64,000 nucleotides of DNA. Source: Podarcis gaigeae (lineage: Eukaryota). Shown here piece by piece: positions 7,285-63,893 of this stretch. The stretch lies in NCBI GenBank assembly GCA_964106915.2, contig OZ066919.1. One strand, 5' to 3'. Within the stretch, counting starts at the first letter, position 1. Each line of letters begins with the position of its first letter. Below the pieces are notes generated by a model that was not told where the DNA came from, searched no databases, and saw only the letters and a program-made list of their open reading frames with translations. The position numbers and the translations under genes are program-made.

Positions 7285-8269
7285 TACCCCTTCATGGATC
7301 ACTGCCTTGCTGTGGCGAAGGGGCTTGAATAACTCAGAGAAGCTATGAGCTATGTCCTGCAGGGCCACCCAAGATGGACAGGTCATAGTGGAGAGTTTTG
7401 ACCAAACGTGATCCACCTGGAGCAGGAACCAGCAAGCCACTCCAGTATCCCTGCCAAGAAAACTCCATGGACAAAGGCAACAGTCATATAAAAGTTATGA
7501 CGCTGGAAGATGAGCCCCTCAGGTCGGAAGGCGTCCAACATGCTACTGAGGAAGAGTGGAGGACAAGTATAAGTAGATCCAGAGCTGATGAAGCAGCTGG
7601 GCCAAAGCCGAAAGGACGCTCAGTTGCGGATATGTCTGGAAGCGAAAGGAAAGTCCAATGCTGTAAAGAAAAATATTGCATAGGAACCTGGAATGTAAGA
7701 ACCGTGAACCTTGGTAAGTTGGATGTGGTCAAAAATGAGATGGGAAGAATAAATATTGACATCCTGGGCATCAGTGAACTAAAATGGACGGGAATGGGCA
7801 AATTCAGTTCGGGTGACCATCATATCTACTACTGTGGGCAAGAATCCCGTAAAAGAAATGGAGTGGCCCTCATAGTCAACAAAAGAGTGGCGAAAGCTGT
7901 ACTGGGATGCAATCTCAAAAATTATAGAATGATCTCGATACAAATCCAAGGCAGACCTTTTAACATCACAGTAATCCAAGTTTATGCACCAACCACTGAT
8001 GCTGAAGAAACTGAAACTGACCAATTCTATGAAGACTTACAACACCTTATAGAAATGACACCAAAGAAGGATGTTCTTCTCATTATAGGGGATTGGAATG
8101 CTAAAGTAGGGAGTCAAGAGATAAAAGGAACAACTGGCAAGTTTGGCCTTGGAGTTCAAAACGAAGCAGGGCAAAGGCTAATAGAGTTCTGCCAAGAGAA
8201 GAAGCTGGTCATCACAAACACTCTTTTCCAACAACACAAGAGACGACTCTACACATGGACATCACCAGA
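7285..8269 (+). mobile_element. BovB (RTE) LINE 5' end: 5'UTR + APE endonuclease ORF, 3' part missing
   Basis: Open frame 7398-8285 with GTWNVRT, DILGISELKW, VIQVYAPT, IIGDWNAKVG, LYTWTSPD; no RT domain follows. Confidence 0.93.
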
Positions 8270-8272
8270 CAA

Positions 8273-8361
8273 CCTTACAACCTAATATCTCAGATGTTCC
8301 ACAATATTCTATTTTGCCCCTTTCTCTCATATTAGTTACTGAAATGTGCTTCTTAAATCAC
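8273..8361 (-). repeat. Inverted duplicate of 1823-1912
   Basis: Reverse complement of 1823-1912 with one substitution and one 1-nt deletion. Confidence 0.95.
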
Positions 8362-29700: not shown

Positions 29701-29875
29701 ATGGCACAGCGTAGCATCGCCGTGGGATTATTAGCAATGACTCTCTTATCCTTGCTGGGTGACAGTTCAGCTTTCCTGCTAAATCAGCGTCTGAAGGGAA
29801 GGTTTCAAAGGGACCGCAGGAATATCCGTCCAAACATCATCCTTGTCCTCACTGATGATCAGGATGTAGAACTTG
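29701..29875 (+). CDS. SULF2: SULF2 first coding exon (signal peptide + start of sulfatase domain), 175 nt
   Basis: [59 protein letters not shown]; [16 protein letters not shown] is SULF2-type rather than SULF1-type; donor G|GTAAG, phase 1. Confidence 0.97.
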
Positions 29876-42039: not shown

Positions 42040-42075
42040 CTTGTGAGTGAGGTGGAACTATTAAGATCAGGAGTA

Positions 42076-44543: not shown

Positions 44544-44862
44544 GTAAGACCAAAATGGGTGAGCTACTTCCCTGGTAGGTTCTTCAGTCCTGTGGCTCAC
44601 GCCTGAGGCTACCAACTTTGGCACTTGAAGGAATACAATGCATAACTTCTCCTAGTCTCTTGTCATCTGCCCGACAATCCCAGAATTCATTTATGCAGAG
44701 ATAGATCTCCATTAAACTCATTGGATATCACTAGCGTTGGGATGAAGAATATGACAGAAGATATTTTATGTGTCTTACTATGAAATAAGGTGAAATAGGT
44801 ACTGGGCACATGATCAAGGGAGCTGAGTGACAGGTGTGACCCATGGCAACAGTCCACCAGCC

Positions 44863-45234
44863 AGAGGGATGGCAGAGGAATTTGGTCTAGTTAGCATTTT
44901 AATGCCAACCTACCTAACAGACACTTCCTGAAACTATATGTGAGCCAAAACATAACTTTCATTTGAAATTTGCACTTCTCTGAATTTTCTTGTGCATTCC
45001 CCAGGTGTGTACAAAATGCATATATTAGGGAAGCATGTGCAAAAATTAGTGAAAGTAACATATGAAAGGGGAAATTGCTTGTAAAAAATGTGTCTATTTG
45101 GAGAAATGAGTACTTACGTAAATGCTATCGAAATTTGCAAACCGATGTGGAAATGTAATTAGCTGAAAATAAGATTGGGGGGGGGGTGAGAGGACCTGAA
45201 AGAAACCAAAATGGACAGATTCATCCGTCGTTAC
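44863..45234. mobile_element. Possible old hAT-Ac-like non-autonomous element
   Basis: Degenerate AGGGATG...CATCC termini and AT-rich subrepeats; no clear TSD. Confidence 0.35.
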
Positions 45235-46038
45235 TACCAGGAAGTGCTTCTGCTCAAGCTTTGTTTGAAAGAAGTGAGAACTGCACAGGATCAAACGAAT
45301 GTTGTTACGCAACTCCTGTTCTTTTCAATGCTATTTGGGTAGAATGCTTGTAGATGGGCATTTTAGTTTCTGTGTGTGGAAAGGGACAGCATTTGGACTT
45401 CTGTCTTGGGATACAAACTATCTTGGGCCAGTTGTGATTACTTTAAAACAGAGGTGCTAACTCAGATGGGCTAGAGACTCATATTGTTTGCCCAGCACCT
45501 GTCTCTCATCCATTCTTTATTCACTCATTTTGATAGTGGAGGAACACATGGGTTAGCTTTATAAATATAAATAAATAAATAAAATGAATAGTTAGTAATA
45601 ATCCAGTTCCATGCTGCCTTTCTTCCTCATCTTGCCTGCCCAAACAGCACATCTCTAATCACCTGTTTCCCCTCCCCTGGGCCTAAACACTACCCTTGCA
45701 AATCCAAAATCCCTATCATCTAAGCCCCTTTCCTCCATACTGATGCTTTCTCTCCAAAATTGTCTTGAATTTGGTCTACCAAAATAGCTGCCAACATCCA
45801 TCATCTCCCTCTAGAGCTCTCTTGTTTTATTTCCTTTATTTCCTTTATGGCAGAGGAAGCTGCAATTGCCACCTGCATTTTGAACTATTCCATTGACGTA
45901 GCTTGTCACCAGCAGTACTCTGAATCCAGGGTTGGTCTACACACAAGAAAACACTATAAATAAGTCATAAATTAAATCAGTATAGCAAAAGAAAAGGAAA
46001 ACACTATGGAAAATCGCATAGAATTTTTTTTTGCTCTC

Positions 46039-46057
46039 CAGTGCCATCTGGTGTTGC
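46039..46057 (-). promoter_or_regulatory. Candidate CTCF motif
   Basis: Minus strand GCAACACCAGATGGCACTG, close to the CCACCAGATGGCA consensus; motif match only. Confidence 0.35.
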
Positions 46058-46265
46058 ATGTTTATAGAAAATTCAGAACACTGGTTTTTTAACTAATGTA
46101 GCTGAGCCTCCAGTCTAGTGGTCTCGGAGCCATTGTTGCACTTCTGCAGCATTGAGAATTACAACATTCAAGGCTTGAGCTAATGCCCACCACTACTTTG
46201 GAGCAAAGTGGATGGAGCAGCCAAGTAATTTCGTTGTCCCTGAGAGGGGGCAATGACAATAAAGA

Positions 46266-46312
<47 letters not shown>
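46266..46312. repeat. (ATT)n microsatellite
   Basis: Direct reading. Confidence 0.98.
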
Positions 46313-46316
<4 letters not shown>

Positions 46317-47351
46317 TGGATCCACATTTCTGTCTTGCAGGCTGGCAGGAGACCTTGTGATTAATGTAGTGTAATCATTGCCATCTTATGGCAAGTCAAG
46401 CGGGTGTGTTTTCATACCATTCTTGTGTCTGAATGCTATTTTGGGAGGTGAAGAGCAATAATTAATACTTATGCTCTGTGGAACAATAGAGTTGCCTGTC
46501 TAGACGAAGCCTTGAGGTGTTGCTGCAATTTAAAAGTTGACTAGTAAACATAGTAACATTACTTTCTAGCTTCTCGTGTTGCTTCTACTCAGCAGCCAGA
46601 CTAGGAACATGTCTTTGAACAAATTAGATAATTTCCTTGCTTTGTTCTGCTCAGATAAAGACCCTGAATTAGTCTGCGATGGAATAAATTGAGGGAAGTG
46701 AGACACCCTATTACTCTGTAGCTGTTTCCTTTTGTTTTATTAATAAGGGCATTAATGTTTTGGGGCCTACAAAATGTGCCACAGACAAAAGTTAACACCT
46801 GCTTTTGTCCTTTCTGTGTGTACTGGATTTGTTGTTGTTTGATCATGCCAATCCCAGCTGTCTGAGCGTTCTGGAGCCAAATTGTGAAAAACTGTGTCAT
46901 GCTCACTCGCAGCTCTGAATTCCTAGCATTGATTCTAGGTGAAGAAGTTCAGGTACAAGTTATGTTGAATATGCAGTGAAAACTCACTGGATATTGAGCT
47001 GCACCTAGTGAGTGCACCTTGCAAACCATTGTTTTAATTTGAATATGCTTTTATCCCTTTGTTTATGTCAGAGGTGCAAATGAAATGCGCAAAGTGGCTT
47101 TTTGGAAACCTTCCTGTGCTGCTTTTGGAGGTTGAGAGAGAGGGGAACAGCACTGACTGGGTGGGGGAAGCGGTTTCCATTGAATGAAAACTGCTTTCTG
47201 CTCCATGAGCAAGGTGTGTTCCTACCATCCATCAGATGATGGGGTGTTTGAAACACACCTTGCTACACACCTTGCTCCGGCAAAGAAACAATTGGGAGAC
47301 CACCCTCAGCTCCTGGTTGTACCTTTAAAGCCCTACCCTTATCCACCCCAT

Positions 47352-47851
47352 GTTGTTGTTTAGTCGTTTAGTCGTGTCTGACTCTTCATGACCCCATGGA
47401 CATGCCAGGCACTCCTGTCTTCCACTGCCTCCCACAGTTTGGTCAAATTCATGCTGGTAGCTTCGAGAACACTGTCCAACCAACTCGTCCTCTGTTGTCC
47501 CCTTCTCCTTGTGCCCTCAATCTTTCCCAACATCAGGGTCTTTTCCAGGGAGTCTTCTCTTCTCATGAGGTGGTCAAAGTACTGGAACCTCAGCTTCACG
47601 ATCTGTCCTTCCAGTGAGCACTCAGGGCTGATTTCCTTCAGAATGGAGAGATTTGCAGTCCATGGAACTCTCAAGAGTTTCCTCCAACACCATAATTCAA
47701 AAACATCAATTCTTCGGCGATCAGCCTTCTTTATGGTCCAGCTCTTACTTCCATACATCACTACTGGGAAAACCATAGCTTTAACTATACGGACCTTTGT
47801 TGGCAAGGTGATGTCTCTGCTTTTTAAGATGCTGTCTAGGTTTGTCATTGC
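47352..47851 (-). mobile_element. 5'-truncated BovB LINE 3' end (500 bp)
   Basis: AMTNLDSILKSRDITLPTKVRIVKAMVFPVVMYG..ELWCWRKLLRVPWTA..LEKTLMLGKIEG; (CAA)n tail; 12-bp TSD TATCCACCCCAT. Confidence 0.95.
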
Positions 47852-49053
47852 TATCCACCCCATACCTGGTGCCATGTATTATTATTATTATTTATTTATT
47901 TAAAGTTGTTTTAAGCTGTTTTTAATATTGTGTAATATTTTAATATTAATGTTGTGTTTCACTTGTTGTAACTCCTCCTGGGTAAAGAGTGGGTTGTTGA
48001 TTATGATGATGCACACTATATCAAACTTGGCATGGTGGGCCGAGTTAGGTCTGCAAACTGGTGGTTCCACACCTAGATTTTGGAACATATAAACAAAACC
48101 TATCACAAACCTCAGGCTAATTCTAAACTAATAAAAAACAAAATTGAGACGTACCAAACACCTGATTAAAAACACAATATCTATCATAATCCATAACATA
48201 ATACACAAACTGAGCATCCAATAGTACAATAATGCAAAGAAACCTTATATCTTATCAGTTAAAGCAGAACAATAACATGATTGTACCATGTCGAAATGCT
48301 CCAAATAGAGGATATTTTGTTATTGTTGTTTAAAAGATTATGAGCTATCTGTTTCATTTCTTCTTTCTCCTTCGATCACTGTAGAGTAAATAAAGTTCGC
48401 TGTAAGCTTTTCTGATTTCTTTTTCTCTGTGGTCCCTGTAGAGCACAGAGTGCATTTAGAATTTCATCAGGGAATTCTCACGCAGGCAGAATCATTCTCA
48501 GCAATGGGCAATCATTCTGTCACCACCAGCTTAAAGAACATCTGCACAGCCACCAAAAATCAATGGATGATGTCATTGGACTGCTGTGTTGCACTTAGCC
48601 AGAGGATCAGAAAGCACTCTCTGAATGCATGTTTTGCATTCTTTCAGAGCGGGCCTTCAACACTTCTTTTACTCATCTCCAGCGTTTGAAACTCCCATTG
48701 TTCTAGGCACGTTTTGCGACAAGGAATATCATTAGCGCGAGCAGTTTCTGAACTCTAGGTTGGGTGCATTGCTGCGCCTAACATTTCAGATTAAAACTGC
48801 AGAGTGGAAGGAAAGGAGGACCTTTTTCTGCCTCCTCACTTCCAGCCACTCTCTGAAGACTGGAAAAGAGACCCTCTTAAGAATATTGGGGGGGGCGGCA
48901 GGCAGGGGAAGCATGGCTTTGTTTTTAGCAGTCTTCAGATGAGGACTAGGCCATGTGAAAAATGAACATAAGATTCTAGCTGCAGTCAGCTTTGAATTCT
49001 TCTTATTAAAAAAGTGCACCTAGTCATTCTGTTGTTGCACTCATAGCCTAGGT

Positions 49054-49189
49054 CAGGCTTCCTCAACATCGGCCCTCCAGGTGTTTTGAGACTACAATTC
49101 CAGTCATCCCTGACCACAGGTCCTGCTAGCTAGGGATCATGGGAGTTGTAGGCCAAAAACATCTGGAGAACCGAGGTTGAGGAAGCCTG
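49054..49189. mobile_element. Palindromic hAT MITE (136 bp)
   Basis: TIRs CAGGCTTCCTCAAC; TSD GCCTAGGT/ACCTAGGT; core shared with 31950-32085. Confidence 0.92.
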
Positions 49190-49330
49190 ACCTAGGTTTA
49201 AGGTGCCATTTAGCTCTTAGCTTTTATATCTCAGTTTCTAACACTGCTCATCTCACTTGGCTTTCCACTGCAGCAGGTTTTGTAGTCACTTGGAAATGGG
49301 GAGAGTTGTGGGGAAAGATATCGTGACTGT

Positions 49331-49732
49331 TTCCGAGTACGTTCCGAGCACAATTCAAAGTGTTGGTGCTGACCTTTAAAGCCCTAAATGGCCTCGGTCC
49401 AGTATATCTGAAGGAGCGTCTCCTCCCCCATCGTTCTGCCCGGACACTGAGGTCCAGCTCCGAGGGCCTTCTGGCGGTTCCCTCACTGCGAGAGGCCAAG
49501 TTACAGGGAACCAGGCAGAGGGCCTTCTCGGTAGTGGCGCCCGCCCTGTGGAATGCCCTCCCATCAGATGTCAAAGCGATAAACAACTACCTGACATTCA
49601 GAAGACATCTGAAGGCAGCCCTGTTCAGGGAAGTTTTTAATATGTGACATTTTAGTGTATTTTTCATCTCTGTTGGAAGCCGCCCAGAGTGGCTGGGGAA
49701 ACCCAGCCAAATGGGCGGGGTACAAATAATAA

Positions 49733-49788
<56 letters not shown>
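49331..49788 (+). mobile_element. Young L2-type LINE 3' end with (ATT)n tail
   Basis: VLTFKALNGLGPVYLKERL..RAFSVVAPALWNALP..FRRHLKAALF. Confidence 0.9.
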
Positions 49789-50854
49789 GTTTCTTGCCCC
49801 CTGACTGCGACTCCATTGCCGTTGCTTCCTGCTCCACCACTACCACCAGCTGGTTGAGGTCCTTCTGCCTCCATGGAAGCTCTGCAGGAAAGGCAGTGGA
49901 AAGAGCTGCCAGACTAGCTTCCCCTTCTCTCACACTCAGGGATCAAAAGGGGGAGAGCTCTGTCCTCCATCCCTGAGTGCTAGCCTTCAACCACCCCCTC
50001 TGCTTCATCTCCTTCATCAACCTCCACTCAGGAATGCTAAACCATGCCAGATCCTGACTAAACCATGCCAGATCCTGGGCACACAACACCTTTTGCATCT
50101 GGCTCTTTCAACCCACAGCCACCATTTTGCATTTGGTTCCAGTTGGTGGGCCTTGAGTTTCTAGTAAACAAACTGTTGTGTATCTCTCCTTGGTACAGCC
50201 CTGGTCAGAGATCCTGGAATCCGATATTCTGTTCCCTGCCCCACACTGCCTTGTCATAGTCCTCCTGTGCTGAATTGTTTTTCAAAAATTCAGCTCAACC
50301 CTCAGCTTAGATTCATAATGCTTAAAAAAATCTTTGAATGAACTCCTGCATGGACTATTGTCTTTAGCCACTTCTCCTAGCTTTTAACATTGTATTTATT
50401 TTTACTTTTCTGTGGTCAGCATCGCAGCCAGATACTAACAAGGAAGCGCTTCTTCCATCATAAGTTGTCTTGCAGGTTTTCCAATTCTGCTTTCCCTTTG
50501 CTATCCCTGGCTCCACCCGAGTGGATGACTGCAGATGAATTTTGTCCACAGTGATCATCTTTAAACCTGTTCCTTTATTTGCACTGTGGCATTTCTTTTC
50601 CCCATAACAATAGCAGCAGAGGTTTCGAAAGAGGAATAAAATCCAGGCAGATGCAGATGTAGCCAGGTTTAATATTGCTACTGCTACCAGCAGTGGAGAA
50701 ATGCTACTTTGTGCGGTCAGGTGAATCAGCAGAAATTGGGATTCGCCCATACTTTGGAGAATGGGAGTAAGCAAGCATAGCATGTGGACAGCATTTCATT
50801 TTCTAGACCTGTGGGTGGATGGGTGTTTGAGAGAGCACAGCTGTGTGTGTGATT

Positions 50855-51000
50855 ACATTTATATCCCACCTTCCCTCCACGGAGCTCAAAATGGTGCATG
50901 TGGTTCCTCACCTCCCCATGTTATTCTCACAACCCTGTGAGATAGGTTCGGCTGAGAGACAGTGACTGTCCCAAGGTCACCCTGTGAGGCTGAGTAAAAT
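50855..51000 (-). mobile_element. CORE/MIR-like SINE
   Basis: TTTATATCCCACC..CTCACAACCCTGTGAGATAGGTT..GCTGAGAGACAGTGACTGTCCCAAGGTCACCC. Confidence 0.7.
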
Positions 51001-52120
51001 GTTGGCCACTGGCCCTGGTCCAACCACTACACCAAATTAGTATACAAATATGTACCCACTTGTTGCATTCATAAAAATAAAAAATATAAAAAAATGCAAC
51101 TGGCAACGTGCTGGACATGATTGGGAAAAACAGGTCTTGTTGAAGACTAGAGAATACTTTGCCAGGACCCTTTCTGCATGAATATTGACTGCTGTCTTTT
51201 AGAAAAATGCCTGTGTGATAAGAGGCAGCCAAATATTAAGGCTGTAAGGTCATATCTCCATATTTGATATATACAGACAGTGAGGAGTTGTTCTTGTGTG
51301 CCAAAGGACCCTACCCATATAGAGATGTCCCTGTATTTTCTTGTGTGCTTCTGGAAGTTGGGCAGAAAAGCAACTTAAGTAAACATTTCAAGTTAAAAGT
51401 TGAAGGTTTAGTCTATGGAAGATCTACCACTTGCAGGCTGAGTCATCGGTGCATTAAAGCGTGGCCACTCTTGAACAGGGTGTGGCAAAAGAAGATTGAA
51501 GGAGGAAACAAAGGACTCATTGCAGTGAGGATTTATTGGTGTCAAAAAACTGTTTCTGCTAAAGTCTCCTTATGTAAACATTTACAAAAGGAATGATCTG
51601 CTTGGGTTTTTCTTTCTTTCTTGTTGGCTGTATCTCCTTCTAGGAGATAGCATTTAAAAGAAAGAATGTGACTTGGGAAGATAGGTCTGTTCCTTGTTCC
51701 TGGAGTCAAGAGTAACATGCCGTTCAAGTGGGAGCAAGGGCATAGCTGATAAGGAAGCAGGATCTTGGCATGAAGGGAAAGAGGTCAGGGGTTAGTAGGT
51801 CATTAGGGGGCTGGCAAGATGTTCATGGGACAGGTTAACTCAGCTTCTTCAGAATTTCCAACTGGCTTATTTTATTTTATTACTTTATTTTATTCATAAA
51901 ATTTGTACACCTTTTGATTGTAAAGAACCACAAAGTGGTTTAGGTGCATTATATATCCATTCCCACAGCAAAAAGCCTTAACAGCCAACAAAAAGATTCA
52001 GTAATAAAAATTGCATAGGCATGTTAACACACTTAGAATTCAACAACATAAATCATCGGTGTTCTCCAAATGCATGGGGAGACAAAAACAGCTGCACAGC
52101 GTCCCCTCAAGCTGGTCTAG

Positions 52121-52429
52121 CTTTGCGCGAAGCCTCCTCAGGGGACGGGGAGTCTTCATCCCCGTGCATTGCAGAGGCTTCTGGGACAGCCCGCGAAGCC
52201 TCCGGAGGACAGCGGGATGAAGGCCCCCTGCTGCCCTGCGGAGGCTTTGCGCCGCTAATCCCGAAGCTATTACAGTGAGACGGAGTGCTGCGCAGCGCTC
52301 CATCTCGCTGTTCTGGCTTCTGGGACAGCCCGCGAAGCCTCCGGAGGGCAGCGGGGTGCCTTCATCCCGCTGCCCTCCGGAGGCTTTGTGCAGCAAAGCC
52401 CGAAGCTAGAACAGCGAGATGGAGCGCAT
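52121..52429. repeat. CpG-rich nested inverted repeats; TIR-less interior of a mariner-type element
   Basis: AAGCCTCCGGAG..CAGCGGG units resemble the interior of 39963-40476; perfect 21-bp stem at 52335-52386. Confidence 0.7.
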
Positions 52430-55400
52430 ATTTTAACCTTTTTAGAAAAAGTTGTTATCTGTATTCATTTTTGTCAGGGCATGACTGAACCCCCCACCCC
52501 ATCCTGGCTTCAGCACAATGGGGGGCATTTTGGGAAGAGGGATGCAAATAGTTTTTGCTCCACATACTAGCTGTAGGTTTTATTTTCCTTACTGCTATAT
52601 GTCACAGATGCAAGCATGCATAAGTTTACTATAAAATCAATTAAGCACAAAATGCAATAAATTAAACACAATGTGTTGTTCCTGTGAAATACTTTCTATA
52701 CTGGGTTTTTTTTAAGTTCACCAGCCACTAGTAATGTACCTAACAGCAGATAATATTGCTAGAATAATAACTGAATTGTAACCTTTTGCAAATAAGTGGT
52801 TGATTGTGAAGGGAAGAAAATTGCTCAGAGTCAAAGAGACAAAAGGGCAAATAACGGAAGTATATTATCGAAGGTTGCAGAATAAGTCAGAGCCAGGAAT
52901 AGGGACTCTGGTTTCTGAGTCACAGTTCTCTGTGCTGACTCCTAACCACTGAAACCAGATCTAATCCCACTGGGACGTCTCTGTTTATGCTGTATGCATT
53001 ACAGCCGAGGTAAAAAAGAAGGCCTGAATTCAACATTGAACCAAGAAAGGGGTGTTTTATTCTGCAGCAAATAATCCTAGAATGATTATAAATGATACCT
53101 GGAAGGTAGCTTCTGAAGCATGCAACATCAGAATTGTGCTGAGGGGGTCCTAATGGCAAGAATATAACCTGTACAGCTCATTTCATGTGTACACTTGCAA
53201 AAAGTGGAACCTACAGGGTGGAATTCAACATAGTGCTAAGGGAAATATTCTGCAAATACAAATTCTTATGCTGATGGAACAAGATTTCTCCACCTGTCCT
53301 TCATGCCCCCTAAATCTGATCTAGGGGATCTTACAACCCTCTGGAGATTTTGGGAGGATGTGAGGTGCACATGGGGGAGGGGAATGAGAATGTCTGTTGC
53401 AGAAATCCTTGTACTGATGGGAAGCCATAGTAGAATGCTAGCCATTAATCCAGACTTGCTATGCATCCAGACCAAAAATCTTGTCATTCTTGTTCATTGC
53501 CTCATAACTAATATTGACATATTTTCCATGCATGTGTTTCTTCCTTTACATTCTCTTCCCCCACACCCCATGTTAATTTCTGTTTTTCCAGCATTTTATA
53601 GTAACTAACAAAACATGCTAGAGATACCCTCTCTGCATGGGGGGCGGGGAGTCCCATCAAATAAATTGTTCAGAAAGCAGGTCTCCAAAATCCATGGAAA
53701 AGAAATCAATAACAATATCCGATGGGAAACCCATTCAAGAAAAGGGGGATATGCGGAATATGTTATCATTCCTTACCCAACAGCAGTAAATTGCTTCATT
53801 AAAGCCTGACCCTTACCCAGTGAGTGTTAAGATAAATGGTTTGACCTTTTGTAGAAAACAATTGATCAGAATGGGAATTCTTGACTAATAGCCTATATCT
53901 TCCTACCGAAAAGTAGCAACAATAGATTTAAGTATCCTCCACTGACTCAGAATCCTTGGGGAGAGATCCACTAAAAGCTATACAGCTGATTGATTTATTG
54001 CTAAACTTGATTTTTACCATTGATGGGTATTGAAACACTTTCGTTAACATCATAGAAGTGCATGAAAACTTAATCTAAAAGCCTTTTTAGATCTAGTTTG
54101 GTTTCTGTCTTTAATAATTGTAAAGATGTCAACCATTCTTCACTGTAAGAAGCCAGCTGCTAGCCCTCCACACTTTCAGGTACCCCATTAACGATCAGAT
54201 TCTTGTGAGGAATTAACATGGTTGGTCCCTCACGTGCCTCAGTATATTTGATGATGTATCCTGAAAAAAAGGGAGACAGCCTGGATGTATCCATATCTAT
54301 AAAAATGAAGCTAAAGAATCAATACAAACATTTAATGCTCCCTTGCCACACTGCAAACCATTATAAGTCTATTTTCTTTCTCTTCCCCGCTTCTCCCTTT
54401 ATTTTTACCTGAATATACCTTTGCTCAGTGTATTTTTAAATTGCCTTAAGAGGCTTCTCCTTTCATTTTTCCTCCATTGCTAATGTATTGTTCTGAAGGG
54501 ATGCCAGCACCTGCCTTTAAAGAATAATGCTTTCTCATATTGATTTATCATTTCAGCCAAGAAGTAATATTTAGTTTGGTATTTGCAAAGAAATGGGATT
54601 CTTATCTTGAAGCCGTCAGAACAGTAAAAACCTAAGCAGGGTATTTGCCCGTTTGTCAAAGGCTTTCTGCAATCCATGTTAGATTTAGATCTTATGGAGA
54701 CTGCATTGCTAAAATAAAGAAACAGAAAAGGATTTGTTGCATTATTGAACCCATGACTTTTTCGGAAAGATGATATAATTCCCTTGAGAATACGAGCAAT
54801 TTATAGAAGCCTAAGAATATACTCTGGCCCTGGTGTATATGCCACATTCCCAGCTTTGATCTTGTTCTGCCATTAACATGCAGAACTGCTGTTGAAAATT
54901 TGGAAGGTGGAGCTACACGTTCCATGTCATTCTGTGGTGTGTGTTTTTGTCGGAGTTTCTTCTTGTGGCTGTTGCGAAATGCAGCTGTTGAAGATACAGT
55001 TTGAAGAAGGAAGCTGTCATAGCATGAGAGCTGTCATTTCCCCCACAAAATAATCACTGCCATACTTCTGATTTTACCTCTAGTCAGGGAAAAGCTGCAG
55101 TTCCTCATGGTTCCTTTTCTCCACCCCACAGTTTGAGAGCTATTTTGAGTGGGGAAAAGCCATTGGAAAAATAGGAAACCCATCTCCTCCAGCATTCATC
55201 TTCCCCTTCAAATTACTGTTACAGTGCCAAATTTGAATTTTGTAACACAAAATTAAGAATCATGGGAACTACGTTGGACACATCATTGTTCTGTACTCAC
55301 AATGACCCACTTTGTGTGTAATGCTAAGCTAAACCATGACTTAGCATGAGCCTGTGAGCTCCTGGAATGGAGATCATGGCTGCTGTGCTCCTTCCCCCAT

Positions 55401-55584
55401 CTTCTTGTTATGCTACCCAGGACTAAGCCTTGGTTTGGTGTAGCATGTCATTTGCACCTGAGCTCCTGGTTTGTCTTGCTCAAGACAAATCAGGAGCTGT
55501 AACCAAGGATTACTCTTGAATTTACTGCTCACAGTTTGTCTGGATCAGACAAACCAGGAGCCCCAGGTTCAGACAAGCCAAACC

Positions 55585-55631
<47 letters not shown>

Positions 55632-56054
55632 TTATTTATACCCCGCCCATCTGGCTGAGTTTCCCCAGCCACTCTGGGCGGCTCCCAATCAGTGTTAAAA
55701 ACAGTACAGCATTACATATTAAAAACTTCCCTGAACAGGGCTGCCTTAAGATGTCTTCTGAACGTCAGGTAATTCTTTATCTCTTTGACATCTGATGGGA
55801 GGGCGTTCCACAGGGCGGGCGCCACTACCGAGAAGGCCCTCTGTCTGGTTCCCTGTAGCCTCACTTCTCGCAATGAGGGAACCGCCAGAAGGCCCTCGGC
55901 GCTGGATCTCAGTGTTCGGGCTGAACGATGGGGGTGGAGACGCTCCTTCAGGTATACAGGACCGAGGCCGTTTAGGGCTTTAAAGGTCAGCACCAACACT
56001 TTGAATCGTGCTCGGAAACGTACTGGGAGCCAATGCAGATCTCTCAGAACCGGT
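55585..56054 (-). mobile_element. Young L2-type LINE 3' end with (ATT)n tail
   Basis: Near-identical peptide to 49360-49647 on the opposite strand. Confidence 0.9.
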
Positions 56055-58218
56055 AGCTTAGCAGCTTAGCAGCTTAGCAGCTGGGCGACCAAGGAAGGAG
56101 TGCAGCTGCTGCTGTGATCTCCTTTCCAGGAACCCTCCACACTAATGCACCCACACTAAGCCAAGGTTTATGTATGAACTGAGCCAGGAGTAACTCAGTG
56201 AACTCAGCGAGACCTAGTGGGACAACAAGGAGAAGGGCCTATTTGGTTGTGCCCTTCACTTATTGGTTGTGCCCTTGGCTGATTGTGATTCATTAGTTCT
56301 ATTTGAAAATTTATTGTTTGCTGATGATGTATTAATAAGCGTGGTGCTGTGTTAGCATGATCTTGGTTGTGTCAGGTTTGGAGGCAAAGCTGGCAAGTTG
56401 CAAGGCTTCCTTATAGAAAGTGTAGCTATATAGCAGCTTAATCTGTTTTATTGAAGAAGAGCAGGGTATTTTAATGCCATCATCATCATCACAGAGGGGT
56501 CTGTGGAGGGGATATATTGATTGAAAATGTTTAGCCAACCAGATTGGTAGTTGGATTCCTATTGAGTATATTTGGTGACCCGACATGACAGTGATGTGGA
56601 ATTGAGGACTGGAGTGATTATCCTGTGATACTATGGCTGTGGACAAAGCTGTATTGAATAAATGTTTTTTTATTTAAAAATAAATGCAAGAACTTAAACA
56701 AAACCCTGGTTAAGCATACTCACCATTCTCAATGAACCATGCCTATTGCTGTTTCCAATCTGGAGACAAGAGCGTTCTGGGAACTAACATGGAACTGGCT
56801 CTACATATCCTGTTTGGCTTCTCCAAACCTCATAATTTCTTTGCAGGAACAACTTTCCTTGAGTAATACACCCCCAGGCACTCCCTAGTTACATTTTGCT
56901 CTGTTTTAGTCCACAAATTTTGTTTCATCCCTGTTGCCCTTACTTCAGATGCTACTCTAAGCTCCAGGGTTTGAAACGGGAATGAAATTTCAACTAAATC
57001 CTGTTCTTTGTGAATCCCGTAATCAGTAAATACCCTTTAGCATACATTTATGGAAAGGAAAGGGAAACTTGGAGCAGTGTTAGGTTTTCATACCTTAACT
57101 CACAGAGAAACATCAACCAACATTTATAAAAACACAGACGTCTGTGCTTCTTGCCAAAGTTTCTCCAGAAAGAAGCTACTTTAAAATGTCACGGTATCTT
57201 ACAGTTCCTTGTGTCTGAAAGCGACTTCTGGGAGGGTGGAATGTTTGTGGTCAGAAGAACCAGTCAGACTCTTAATGGGTGGGAGGCTTCTGTTAATTGA
57301 GTTCATTAAGACTATACTGTCTCCTTTGTCTATTTATTTATTTATAAACCCATGTTTTTCCTAGTGCGTCTTCCAAGTTTATTGCTAAATGGAACAAAAC
57401 CAATTCTGTTTATAAAGGTACTTTTTACATAACATAAGCTGGGACCTTTCCAGAGTTAAGCAATCTTGTAAAATAAATAAATATTGTGGGCAAAATTATA
57501 CATACTTACATTTATTATTATTATTATTATTATTATTTTATTTTGAAAAATAGCCCTGAGGTCTGAATGTGGCACTGTAAGTTTGTGAAAAATCTTATCA
57601 GCAGACACAGAACATAATGTAAAGGTTTCTCTGCTCACTGTAGGTAAGAGTCTGCGTAAATGGATTACATTTCCAGGACTCAGATAAATTATAAATTGTG
57701 GATTTTTATCCCACTGTTACATTGGACAGAGCTAACAAATTTAGAATGGCAGTATCAAGCATATTAAATGAATGAAACATGCAGCCCAAGGCATAGCACT
57801 CTGCAGAAATAATTCACAGCACTGGGGATCCACAAAGCTTGAACTGGCCTTGGTAGTTAATGACAATTTGTACTTGCCAACATTCCTTCTCTGCTGCTGG
57901 GGGAAGTGTTCAGGTCTGTGCCATCTTGCTGAGTCTTGTGGGCAATGTGAGCCTACAACCTCCATCCTGTGCACTAAACTGGGGTTAGCAGGCTTGTCCC
58001 TGTCCTGCTGAGCCCTGGAGCCATTTGGAAACCAGTGAGACATTTATATTGCATTGTGCTGAGAGCCTCTTCCCTTCTGCAGGCTCTAGAGATAGGGAGT
58101 GTTTTTTGCCAGATTTGAAAAGGCATCTGCCAGTAGTCAGCTGAAAAGTATGTTAGTGGACCTCCGTACAGAGACAAATGTAATTTTACATGACTAGCCT
58201 ATCAAAAGGTGAAAAGTG

Positions 58219-58253
58219 AAAGGCGAAAGATTTATACGATCTGAAGAGAAACC
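58219..58253 (-). pseudogene. U5 snRNA fragment (approx. nt 8-42, ending in loop I)
   Basis: Reverse complement reads GGTTTCTCTTCAGATCGTATAAATCTTTCGCCTTT, matching the vertebrate U5 5' region as I recall it. Confidence 0.93.
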
Positions 58254-58288
58254 TTCTCGGCCTTTTGGCTAAGATCAAGTGTAGTATC
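58253..58288 (+). pseudogene. U2 snRNA fragment (approx. nt 5-40, ending just past the branch-point recognition sequence)
   Basis: CTTCTCGGCCTTTTGGCTAAGATCAAGTGTAGTATC matches the vertebrate U2 5' region. Confidence 0.95.
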
Positions 58289-59051
58289 AAAAGGTGAAAA
58301 GTGTAAGGATATTTTGGATGGCATCATGGCATCAGGTGCTAAATCTGCTTAGTATTTTGAAACTTAAAAAACAAAAACCCACCGTGTACAAGCAGTGGCA
58401 GTATATGGGACATCATGCTAACTTGGGCTAAAATGCTGCTGAAAAGAATTGCTTTGTTTTGCCATTTGGAGATGTTCTGTTCTCATGTGCCCAACAGCTG
58501 CTCCAGCCAGAAGCTTAGAGTTGTGGCTCAGTCATTTATGGAATATTAATTCTCCATCTGTAAAAAATGGTTTTATTGGGTTTTGGGTTTTGGTAGGAAA
58601 GGTTTTAATTAGTTTTAGAATGGTTACTTTAGTTTTGTATTTTATCTCGTTGTTTTTTTATCTTGTTGAGTGCTGCTTTGATGGCTTCAGGCTGTGAAGT
58701 GGTTTATACATTTGTTAAATAAATAAATGAATGGCAAGGAGAGGAGCAGGAATAGTGCCAGATGCAGCTGTGTTTAGTTGTGATATAATGGCGAGGCACG
58801 GAAACCTTCACGGAAAGGCTGTGTTCCAACCTTTCACTGTGGACAAGGATCAATATCCCAATCCATCATCCCTAGATACTGAGGCAAGGAGAAGAAATCT
58901 ACTCCACTATTCAATTACCCACACATTACTGTGGATTGCACTTAACTCTCTAAATATTGGAAGTGCCTCAGGAAGCAGAGTAACCCGAGAAAGTGTTTGA
59001 TTCCACAGTCCTTTCTTGGGAGAGCATGGCTGTCCATTTATTGTTTTACTC

Positions 59052-59171
59052 CAGTATTCACCCACCTGATGCCCTCCAGATGTTTTAGGCTGCAATTTCC
59101 ATCAGCCCCGGCTGAGACTGATGGGTGTTGTCATCTTAAACATCTGTAGGGCACCAGGTAGGTGAACGCTG
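59052..59171. mobile_element. Old palindromic hAT MITE
   Basis: CAGTATTCACCCACCTGATGCCCTCCAGATGTTT...AAACATCTGTAGGGCACCAGGTAGGTGAACGCTG. Confidence 0.75.
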
Positions 59172-59523
59172 CTTGACATCATAACACCTTGGCATTTACT
59201 TTGCATGTTGCTGTTGTTTTAGTTTGGTTGATGCAGATGACCTAATTAAAGGCAAAGGCAGTGTGACTTTAAAGGTCAGAGGGCTGAACTGGAATTTGTT
59301 AGCACTCTTCTGGCTTTGCATGAACTTGGATACAAACTAGCTGTTAGGCATCTGTGCAAAATTCCTATGCCTGCCTGTGCAAGGTGACTGGAATTCTTGC
59401 ATGGTATTTTAATGTATATTAGCTCTTTGCTGGCTGGCTGGCTGGCTGGCTGGCTTCCTTCTTCCTCTTTGCTGCTGGAAAAAGAAGTTGAGCATTATCA
59501 TGGAGTGGATGAGGAGATCTGCA

Positions 59524-59650
59524 GCAGCACCAACTTGGCCCCACAACCGTGGGTGCCTGGGGCCATGGGTGCCATGAAGCATGCATGGCCCTGGCATCGA
59601 AATTTGATGGGTGCTCGGGCACCCAGGGCCCCAGGGAGTTGGCACCTATG
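59524..59650. mobile_element. Short palindromic MITE-like element
   Basis: GCACCAACT..GGCCCC..GGGTGC / GCACCC..GGCCCC..AGTTGGCACC. Confidence 0.45.
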
Positions 59651-61231
59651 AGCAGCACTGAGAGGGCTAGAAGGAAGCTCTCTGCAGTAGCAGCTGTCAG
59701 AGCTGATAGTTGCTGCAGTCACTCTGGGACACTGAACACAAACAGTTACAAAACCAAAGTATTTTATTAGGGAGATTTAATCATACATTAAAAACAACGT
59801 GCATAAACAGCACATTGTTGTGTATATCTACTATCTCTCGAGGACTGAGGCGGAAGGAAACCAGTTTTGCTGCTTTGAAGCACCAACAAGAATGGTGCAG
59901 AGTACTGTTTGGTGATGCGATGCACTTGTGACATCACAAAGCACACACACCCTTCTCCTTGGAAAAAAATGGTGCTTGGATATCTGGAGGCAAGAACATG
60001 TGGCATGAAGATGAAGGGAAGCTAGGCTTGGCAAGCTATCTGTCTAGCAGGCCCTTGTTTTTAGCTACAACTGTATGCATCTTTATAGAGACTATAGCAA
60101 TAAAATAGTAACATAAAACATAGTGGAGCTAAGGCTAGTGCATTCCTTGCTCACTCTTGGCTAAGATAGATTTATTAAGCAGCTCATAAAAAAAAGGTTT
60201 CAAAAGTCTCTTAAAACAATTTCTGATTTGTTGGTGTTGATTTCATGACCTCTTGCCCATAATTTTCTGGAGCAGCCCATTTCTCTCTAAGAATACACAA
60301 AGAGGACCAAGAGTGGTTTTCTGACCCCACCTCTTTTGTACAATTGTAGTAACCAGACCAGATCTGCATCTGGCCAAACAGAGTTGGGCAAGTCATGAAT
60401 GAGATAACTGCCAGGAGTCCATTCACATTTAAGGGAGCAGCCCTAACCCACCTTCTCTGGCACTATCAGTAGGTTGGGAGGCAGGATGATCAGGCCAGAT
60501 GCAGTTGCTGAAATGTCTGGGCCTGGGCTGACTCAGACCCTCTCCCTCCCCACTTCTGGAGCACCTTTCTTCAGGGTCTACATCCTGTAGTTGGAAGGGA
60601 GAGTGCCACACCAACAGGAGGCTGCCGTATCTGGGCTCAGAGACCCCTCCACCTAATCCAGCTCCCCCACTGACTCAAGTCTGGAGTCAGTGAGTGTTGA
60701 ATTACTCTGTAAACACCAAGTCCCAGGAAGGACAGGCAGACTAGACAGAATATGCCTCCTAAGAGGATCTGGTCATTGAAAAGGTGTCACGAGTCATTTG
60801 CTGTGTGGCAAACAGGATTGTACAGAATGAATGCAATTTACGTGCCCATCATCATCTGAAAGGCGAAAAATGTAACTTTCCTTTTGGTAAAGTATTCCTT
60901 TCCAGTTGTTAGGAAGGGATTCTTAATCACTTGCTATAGGTGAGCAAGCCAATGGCCATTTGCAGCTCTTGCTGTAAATTTTCTGAGCAAGCTCTGAGTC
61001 CCTTCCCTATTCTGTTTCATGCTTAATGCACTGTTAGCGCTAAGTAAGTGTTAAAGCATCTGCTTTAAAATAAAATATTAAAATAAAATATGATTGGATA
61101 GGGAAAATATTATCACTTTGTCTGCAAGAGCTGAAAACTAAAGAGATCTATACTGTAGTGTGATTATCTTCTATACATTTATATGTATTGCTTTCTCCTC
61201 ACAATGTCTCTTCTCTCTCTTTTGCTTCCAG

Positions 61232-63019: not shown

Positions 63020-63451
63020 GGAGGGCCAGATTTAGTTTGATGAGGCCCTAAGCTACTGAAGGTAATGGGGCCCTTTATATGTCCAGCTGTCATTTGTCAA
63101 CAACAAATTGTTGCTGTTTTTCGTGTTGAATACATGCTATGTCATAATTTATGGACCTATTGGGTATCTAAAGCCATTTGCACATAACAAAATATGTATT
63201 TTATCAAAGTAATTGTTGAACTGAAATACAATTAAGAAGAAGTATATTAATAGTGAAATAATTTTTAAGCTCTAACTTAAAATGATTTTTTATTCATAAC
63301 AAACTTAATAATGCAAACACATTGGCATTTGGCAATAACAAAAGTTCCTTTAGAAACACAATTTACAAAGACTCATAATTTTTGGGGGGGGGACCAAGAG
63401 AGTGGGGCCCTAAGCTATAGCTTGTTTAGCTTATACGTAAATCCAGCACTG
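63020..63451. mobile_element. Non-autonomous hAT-like element
   Basis: GGGCCAGATTTA...TAAATCCAGCACTG imperfect termini, GGCCCTAAGCTA subterminal repeats at both ends. Confidence 0.55.
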
Positions 63452-63532
63452 GTGCTGGAAGTTGGGGAGCAGCAAAGTTCTGGAAGGACAGAGCTGTCTG
63501 ATTCTTTTATAGGGGGAAGTCTTGATTCTTAT

Positions 63533-63893
63533 GGGATGCGGGTGGCACTGTGGGTTAAACCACAGAGCCTAGGGCTTGCCGATCAGAAGGTCGGCGGTTC
63601 GAATCCCCACAACAGGGTGAGCCCCTGTTGTTCAGTCCCTGCTCCTGCCAACCTAGCAGTTCAAAAGCACGTCAAAGTGCAAGTAGATAAATAGGTACCA
63701 CTCCGACGGGAAGGTAAACGGCATTTCCGTGAGCTGCTCTGGTTTCGCCAGAAGCAGCTTAGTCATGCTGGCCACATGACACGGAAGCTGTACGCCGGCT
63801 GCCTCAGCCAATAAAGCGAGATGAGTTCTGCAACCCCAGAGTCGTCCGCAACTGGACCTAATGGTCAGGGGTCCCTTTACCTTTACCTTTACC
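63533..63893 (+). mobile_element. Full-length Sauria SINE
   Basis: tRNA-like head with B box GGTTCGAATCC, (ACCTTT)n tail, TSD TGATTCTTAT/TGACTCTTAT. Confidence 0.95.

Follow-up and report, generated by a model that had tools for sequence, protein, structure and literature searches.

The SULF2 locus

The window analysed here is a stretch of 64,000 nucleotides from Podarcis gaigeae (contig OZ066919.1, assembly GCA_964106915.2). It carries coding exons of SULF2 on the plus strand at 29.7, 44.3 and 61.2 kb. The exons were compared one by one, and the translations of the first two are identical to lacertid SULF2. The nearest SULF2 exons lie 13.7 kb upstream and 2.9 kb downstream of the insertion described below (Table 1). 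The window contains no N, and no tandem array was found at the insertion site. A neighbouring open reading frame (63311-63691) gave no match among other contigs of the same species.

Several transposable elements were observed elsewhere in the window. Judged by their translations, the open reading frames at 7398-8285 and 47360-47875 are probably fragments of BovB-like elements, the former of the endonuclease part and the latter of the 3' part on the reverse strand. A Sauria SINE at 42063 (13-bp duplication) is common to P. lilfordi and absent from two other loci, and a BovB fragment at 47340 (12-bp duplication) is common to P. raffonei and likewise absent from two other loci. Both are possible phylogenetic markers. 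Many elements of 134-136 bp with terminal inverted repeats and 8-bp duplications are polymorphic across the lacertid loci compared (window 31942; L003:71594; L004:20171 and 62223). By appearance, they may be hAT-like MITEs.

Structure of the insertion and identity of its parts

A 19-mer is present exactly twice in the window, starting at 58200 and 58285. The two copies agree in all 19 bases, the identity is not extendable leftward, and they enclose 66 bp, as reported in the preliminary description. The 66 bp consist of parts of U5 and U2 snRNA in opposite orientation, with their 5' ends facing each other and a single target-site duplication (TSD) around both. The earlier reading, U5 from about nt 8 to 42 on the minus strand joined through position 58253 to U2 from about nt 5 on the plus strand, was thereby reproduced. 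Relative to the RNA 5' ends, 4 nt are missing from the U2 part and 7 nt from the U5 part. Neither poly(A), in line with the earlier account, nor LINE letters were found in the 66-bp insert, and no separate duplication surrounds the U5 or the U2 fragment. The U2 part ends at nt 40, just beyond the branch-point recognition sequence. Its nt 37-40 overlap the right TSD copy, so that the 3' end of U2 equals the first four TSD bases, which had also been recognised before.

Table 1 Features of the locus (positions in the window)
Feature	Position	Strand	Remarks
SULF2 host intron	44544..61231	+	follows second coding exon
Left TSD copy	58200..58218	+	longest identity 19 bp; single copy in five orthologues
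A4 run (bottom strand TTTT/GA, L1-endonuclease-type site)	58204..58207	+	from comparison of five orthologues
Putative top-strand primer end	58215..58218	+	pairing with U5 nt 43-46; would have primed on U5
U5 snRNA nt 8-42	58219..58253	-	3'-truncated in loop I, without nt 1-7; published primer and numbering
Inversion junction	58253		one base common to U5 G8 and U2 C5
U2 snRNA nt 5-40	58253..58288	+	tailless; Rfam RF00004 and published primer
Right TSD copy	58285..58303	+	exact repeat of left copy

The U2 part matches Rfam family RF00004 (49.4 bits, E 1.4e-08), unbroken over the 5' part of the model (58253-58288), and is the sole gathering-level Rfam match in the whole stretch. In addition, nt 5-20 of the published U2 primer are identical to the insert letters. 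The proposed Rfam check thus recovered U2, while U5 was absent from the results for the stretch at E<=10 and was identified by comparison with published data. The reverse strand of 58219-58253 agrees with 24 of the 25 letters of the published U5 primer (nt 8-32), and the part is consistent with the published numbering of G24, G37 and C39.

The junction lies in the 3-nt loop of a 5-bp inverted repeat (58246-58258), because U2 and U5 both have UUCUC near their 5' ends. The two parts also have AGAUC in common. A selected hairpin in the insert was considered and rejected, as the fold of the whole insert has a z-score of only -1.6.

Orthologous empty sites

Whole orthologous SULF2 genes of Lacerta agilis, Podarcis lilfordi, Zootoca vivipara, P. 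muralis and P. raffonei, located via the exon at 29701-29874, were compared with the window. In gap-free columns, the window differs by 3.2% from both P. lilfordi and P. raffonei, by 3.9% from P. muralis and by 6.6% from Zootoca, which places it in a further Podarcis species. The comparison with related lizards that had been suggested earlier gave a clear result: in each of the five lacertid orthologues the site is cleanly empty, with a single 19-mer, neither snRNA fragment and both flanks collinear. No 14-mer in common with either fragment was found across approximately 430 kb of orthologous loci, and no Podarcis orthologue closer than those sampled was found. The insertion is real and lineage-specific. 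In P. muralis, a 4-bp deletion was observed at a branch-point-like 7-mer (58192-58198) upstream of the insertion. A functional branch point beside the insertion was rejected, as this 7-mer does not exceed chance.

At position 7 of the 19-mer, both copies carry an A (58206 and 58291), whereas all five relatives have a G. The G-to-A change therefore preceded the duplication, which was made from the allele of this lineage. The change converts the bottom strand to TTTT/GA, an L1-endonuclease-type site. Such a site lies 0-4 nt from a repeat start by chance at 2.6% of intron positions, and the chance of some private change inside a given 19-mer is 22%.

In the right copy, as in all five relatives, the 19-mer is followed by a T. 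Before the insertion, the minus-strand target thus read CCTTA-CACT. The preliminary description had given CCTTT-CACT on the U5 side. The fifth letter of that version is derived from U5, and the homology between U5 and the target had therefore been overstated. As the relatives have this T after the 19-mer, a 24-bp duplication with a later mutation was rejected.

For the age of the insertion, the split from the sampled Podarcis species gives the only bound. A very young age was rejected as a conclusion: zero changes in 104 sites have a probability of 0.25 even at the full age of the lineage. Elements of the Keno/Utopia type target U2 genes. Such targeting does not apply here, since the empty site is no U2 gene.

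Proposed mechanism of insertion

An A4-creating point change was followed by the gain of 66 bp together with a target duplication; the insert consists of two oppositely oriented snRNA 5' portions. We consider it probable that this was one germline event of target-primed reverse transcription by a LINE ORF2 protein, most likely of the L1 clade, in one Podarcis lineage. In this event the bottom strand would have been nicked at the A4 run or at most 4 nt to its left, and its end would have primed internally on U2 nt 37-40. The top strand would have been nicked 15-19 nt away, and its 3' end would have annealed to loop I of U5 (nt 43-46) and primed there. Both cDNAs may then have been extended nearly to the RNA caps and joined with a one-base overlap before the gaps were filled. 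U2 and U5 would have been recruited independently, both being abundant in the nucleus and having single-stranded stretches that are exposed.

The left TSD copy has a fixed right boundary (58218), while its left boundary can lie anywhere within the 4-nt overlap with U2. Because the first four TSD bases also match U2 nt 37-40, the true stagger is 15-19 nt. At the other end, the target bases 58215-58218 form three Watson-Crick pairs and a terminal G-U wobble with U5 nt 43-46. In this pairing, U43 and A44 follow the published numbering, and the next two bases of loop I are C45 and U46. These data support the statement in the preliminary description that both snRNAs break in single-stranded segments and share short homology with the target there.

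If the nick lay exactly at TTTT/GA, the primer would be unpaired with U2 nt 41-44. The nick was therefore probably placed 1-4 nt further left. A nick at the canonical step would also leave the 4-nt match to U2 without an explanation; such a match has a chance of 0.3% at that position and of 4% anywhere in U2 nt 25-40. Two local inserts with poly(A) also start one base ahead of the A run.

Twin priming in a single insertion, the geometry put forward at the outset, is supported by the empty site in five relatives, none of which has one fragment alone, and by the absence of a second duplication around either fragment. The L1-type site at the U2-sense end combined with a non-consensus cut at the U5 end corresponds to the pattern of human inverted U5/L1 chimeras. 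Likewise, the short homology at both outer ends and the 1-nt junction fit 5'-inverted L1 insertions, which retain discrete duplications of 12-18 bp. Several points weigh against the proposal: it concerns one locus only, a nick exactly at TTTT/GA would not pair with U2, the last pair of the U5 primer is a wobble, and the duplication begins with TA, as BovB and Sauria SINE sites do.

Enzyme responsible for the insertion

Duplications are mostly 7-18 bp long for L1 and 7-15 bp for RTE elements, and the stagger of 15-19 nt is closer to the L1 range and fits it better. Local duplications measure 10-15 bp for Sauria SINE and BovB (RTE-type) inserts (n=10) and 9, 12 and 18 bp for poly(A) inserts. The SULF2 intron of P. 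muralis contains an intact young L1-type element of 6.0 kb on the minus strand (L004:39161-45200) with poly(A) and a 12-bp duplication. The element, which is missing from three of the compared loci, encodes a 335-aa ORF1 and a 1241-aa ORF2 comprising an endonuclease and a reverse transcriptase domain. It shows recent L1 activity in Podarcis. In the poly(A) inserts at L004:39161 and L005:48911, the duplications begin with a G ahead of the A run (n=2), a hint that lizard L1 may nick one base upstream of the mammalian position.

The same twin-priming geometry could also have been produced by a BovB (RTE-clade) protein. This explanation differs in the enzyme only and overlaps with the one preferred here; we regard it as unlikely, though it is the strongest of the alternatives. 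BovB has been active in these loci, and the duplication begins with TA downstream of a T4 run, a pattern similar to the Tn-TA signature known from BovB and Sauria SINE in Podarcis. With the strand nicked at the first T, U2 would have a perfect 4-bp primer. However, these elements have a T run about 10 nt upstream of TA, ending at -9 to -12 (mostly -10) at seven local RTE-type sites, whereas here the T run ends at -13. A nick at TA also implies a stagger and duplication of 19 bp, beyond the RTE range given above. An equally loose match to Tn-TA occurs at 6% of intron positions, and the lineage-specific change that created the A4 run would be mere coincidence if BovB were the enzyme. An enzyme of the L1 clade is the most likely one and is clearly favoured over BovB/RTE.

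Alternative explanations

Instead of being primed at the target, the U5 part may have been made beforehand, so that the free second end of a tailless U2 insertion captured a U5 cDNA by end joining. In L1-expressing cells, extended DNA ends can acquire further cDNA products before ligation, and a capture would be compatible with a U5 primer that finishes on a wobble pair. In contrast, the break of U5 lies in loop I with homology to the target, as in published cases of second-strand priming, and the duplication is intact without any loss, which fits an end shielded by a second priming. Capture of U5 is thus improbable.

The preliminary description had extended twin priming further and suggested that the enzyme may have copied U2 and U5 out of an assembled spliceosome, taken here as a single one on the nascent transcript of SULF2. 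Both RNAs are indeed spliceosomal, the site lies within a transcribed intron, and the branch-point-like 7-mer mentioned above is close by. However, 41% of the positions of this intron have a branch-point-like 7-mer within 20 nt, so that its presence is at chance level. No pyrimidine tract follows the 7-mer, and the closest real splice site is 2.9 kb away. In assembled spliceosomes, the branch-recognition segment of U2 and loop I of U5 are paired and covered by protein. Furthermore, no other templates are as common among tailless copies as U2 and U5, whatever the partner: in human, they account for 113 of 166 characterised 3'-truncated snRNA copies (57 U2, counted under a stricter identity filter, and 56 U5), and U5 is found in four of seven inverted chimeras. 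Given these frequencies, hardly any pair would be likelier than U2 first and U5 second if the RNAs were recruited independently. The extension is thus unsupported, and we consider it quite improbable for this locus.

Beyond this locus, we lean towards the view that LINE-free and tail-free inverted snRNA pairs are a recurrent, overlooked class formed by independent recruitment. There is little to recommend the further-reaching view, according to which snRNA pairings record RNAs that were physically together at chromatin, in its strongest form in one spliceosome on the host transcript.

It is very unlikely that a U5/U2 chimera already existed elsewhere as a source locus or small SINE-like element and that a copy of it was re-inserted here by ordinary priming. 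SINEs headed by snRNA are known from crocodilians (PMC4494074). An element of this kind (SINEU-like) would have many copies with a common junction and a 3' tail. The insert described here lacks a tail, a body and a promoter, and its two outer breakpoints fit this specific target. The orthologous loci lack shared 14-mers, as given above, and the stretch contains no other Rfam match. Moreover, the source locus would itself require the same mechanism.

An artefact of assembly or library preparation is hardly credible, given that the flanks are collinear with five orthologues, the gain equals exactly the insert plus a duplication of the ancestral 19-mer, the breakpoints are biologically typical and neither N nor a tandem repeat is nearby. 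Two separate insertions, one exactly at the 5' end of the other, can practically be dismissed: nothing speaks positively for them, no second duplication and no orthologue with a single fragment exist among the loci compared, and a hit on one exact base would be needed.

Significance

What the insertion left in the intron is a dead relic that lacks a promoter. It was most likely a harmless accident, and there is no indication of a function in the host. Its value lies in providing a clean natural case, with a known empty site, in which both ends of one LINE cut appear to have been primed on non-LINE RNAs. The whole insertion was completed and no poly(A) template left a trace. This favours models in which ORF2p takes up nuclear snRNAs at the target (models b and d of Doucet et al. 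2015) and would extend snRNA twin priming to a squamate. The point change that made the cut site before the insertion neatly illustrates target choice. Since published screens were anchored on L1, they may have overlooked a class of RNA/RNA pairs, which is easy to seek.

Comparison with known retrocopies

Insertions primed on two RNAs are already known (PMC4476161, PMC13174262, PMC11702581), and in this respect the novelty assumed in the preliminary description does not hold. What appears to be new is that an snRNA takes the position of the LINE partner. An inverted pair of two snRNAs was not found described in the literature searched, which left older and subscription papers uncovered, so that its absence is unproven.

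In L1-expressing cells, de novo insertions of two RNAs in opposite orientation have been observed (PMC11702581). As proposed here, opposite DNA ends were extended on different RNAs and then ligated. The examples given there have poly(A) and come from cell culture, in contrast to the tailless germline insertion of P. gaigeae. Antisense 5S/L1, tRNA-half/L1 and U5/L1 chimeras have likewise been ascribed to twin priming (Law et al. 2026, PMC13174262). They resemble the present locus in that short 5' parts of structured RNAs lie head to head with the first-strand product. That screen was anchored on L1 5' ends, and L1-free RNA/RNA pairs were therefore undetectable in it. Chimeras of U6 and L1 in the same orientation are also bipartite snRNA retrocopies within one duplication, but they differ in their orientation, in the full-length U6, in poly(A) and in their mechanism (template switch or RtcB ligation).

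Tailless or 3'-truncated snRNA copies are known from therians and the anole and were tied to L1 (Noll et al. 2015, PMC5322556). Tailless retropseudogenes are also treated in Doucet 2015 and in Schmitz 2004 (as cited within). The insertion shares with this group the near-complete 5' part, the putative internal priming in a single-stranded segment, the missing tail and the flanking duplication; Noll et al. (2015) tolerated 5 nt missing at the RNA 5' end. Of the consensus TT/WAAAAWW, the A4 core is present, whereas the bases around the core differ. Unlike tailless retropseudogenes, which contain one RNA per copy, the locus has two opposite RNAs within one duplication.

The closest likeness is to the inverted chimeras of Doucet et al. 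2015 (U5/L1, U5/SVA, U1/L1, U2/L1 and U6/L1), which were explained by twin priming (PMC4476161). Four U5 copies are inverted relative to L1 or SVA in one duplication; their cuts all fall in loop I (nt 36, 43, 46 and 48) and show homology to the target, and the cleavage consensus is found in the orientation of the partner only. Like these members of Group IV, the P. gaigeae insertion has a 3'-truncated reverse U5 at the second-strand end, cut at nt 42 and thus inside the range of 36-48. One duplication encloses both opposite parts, and U5 is truncated in a single-stranded segment with target homology (three pairs and a wobble). The L1 consensus is again confined to the partner orientation: in the orientation of U2, TTTT/GA is found 4 nt within the duplication, taken at its longest identity, and the U5 end has none. 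Unlike Group IV, the partner is a tailless U2 (nt 5-40) instead of L1 or SVA, and the host is a lizard, not human. Taken together, the locus joins a textbook U5 half to a U2 half that is an ordinary tailless copy. It works like the group of inverted snRNA/LINE chimeras, yet it is no member of that group, as its partner is not a non-LTR retrotransposon.
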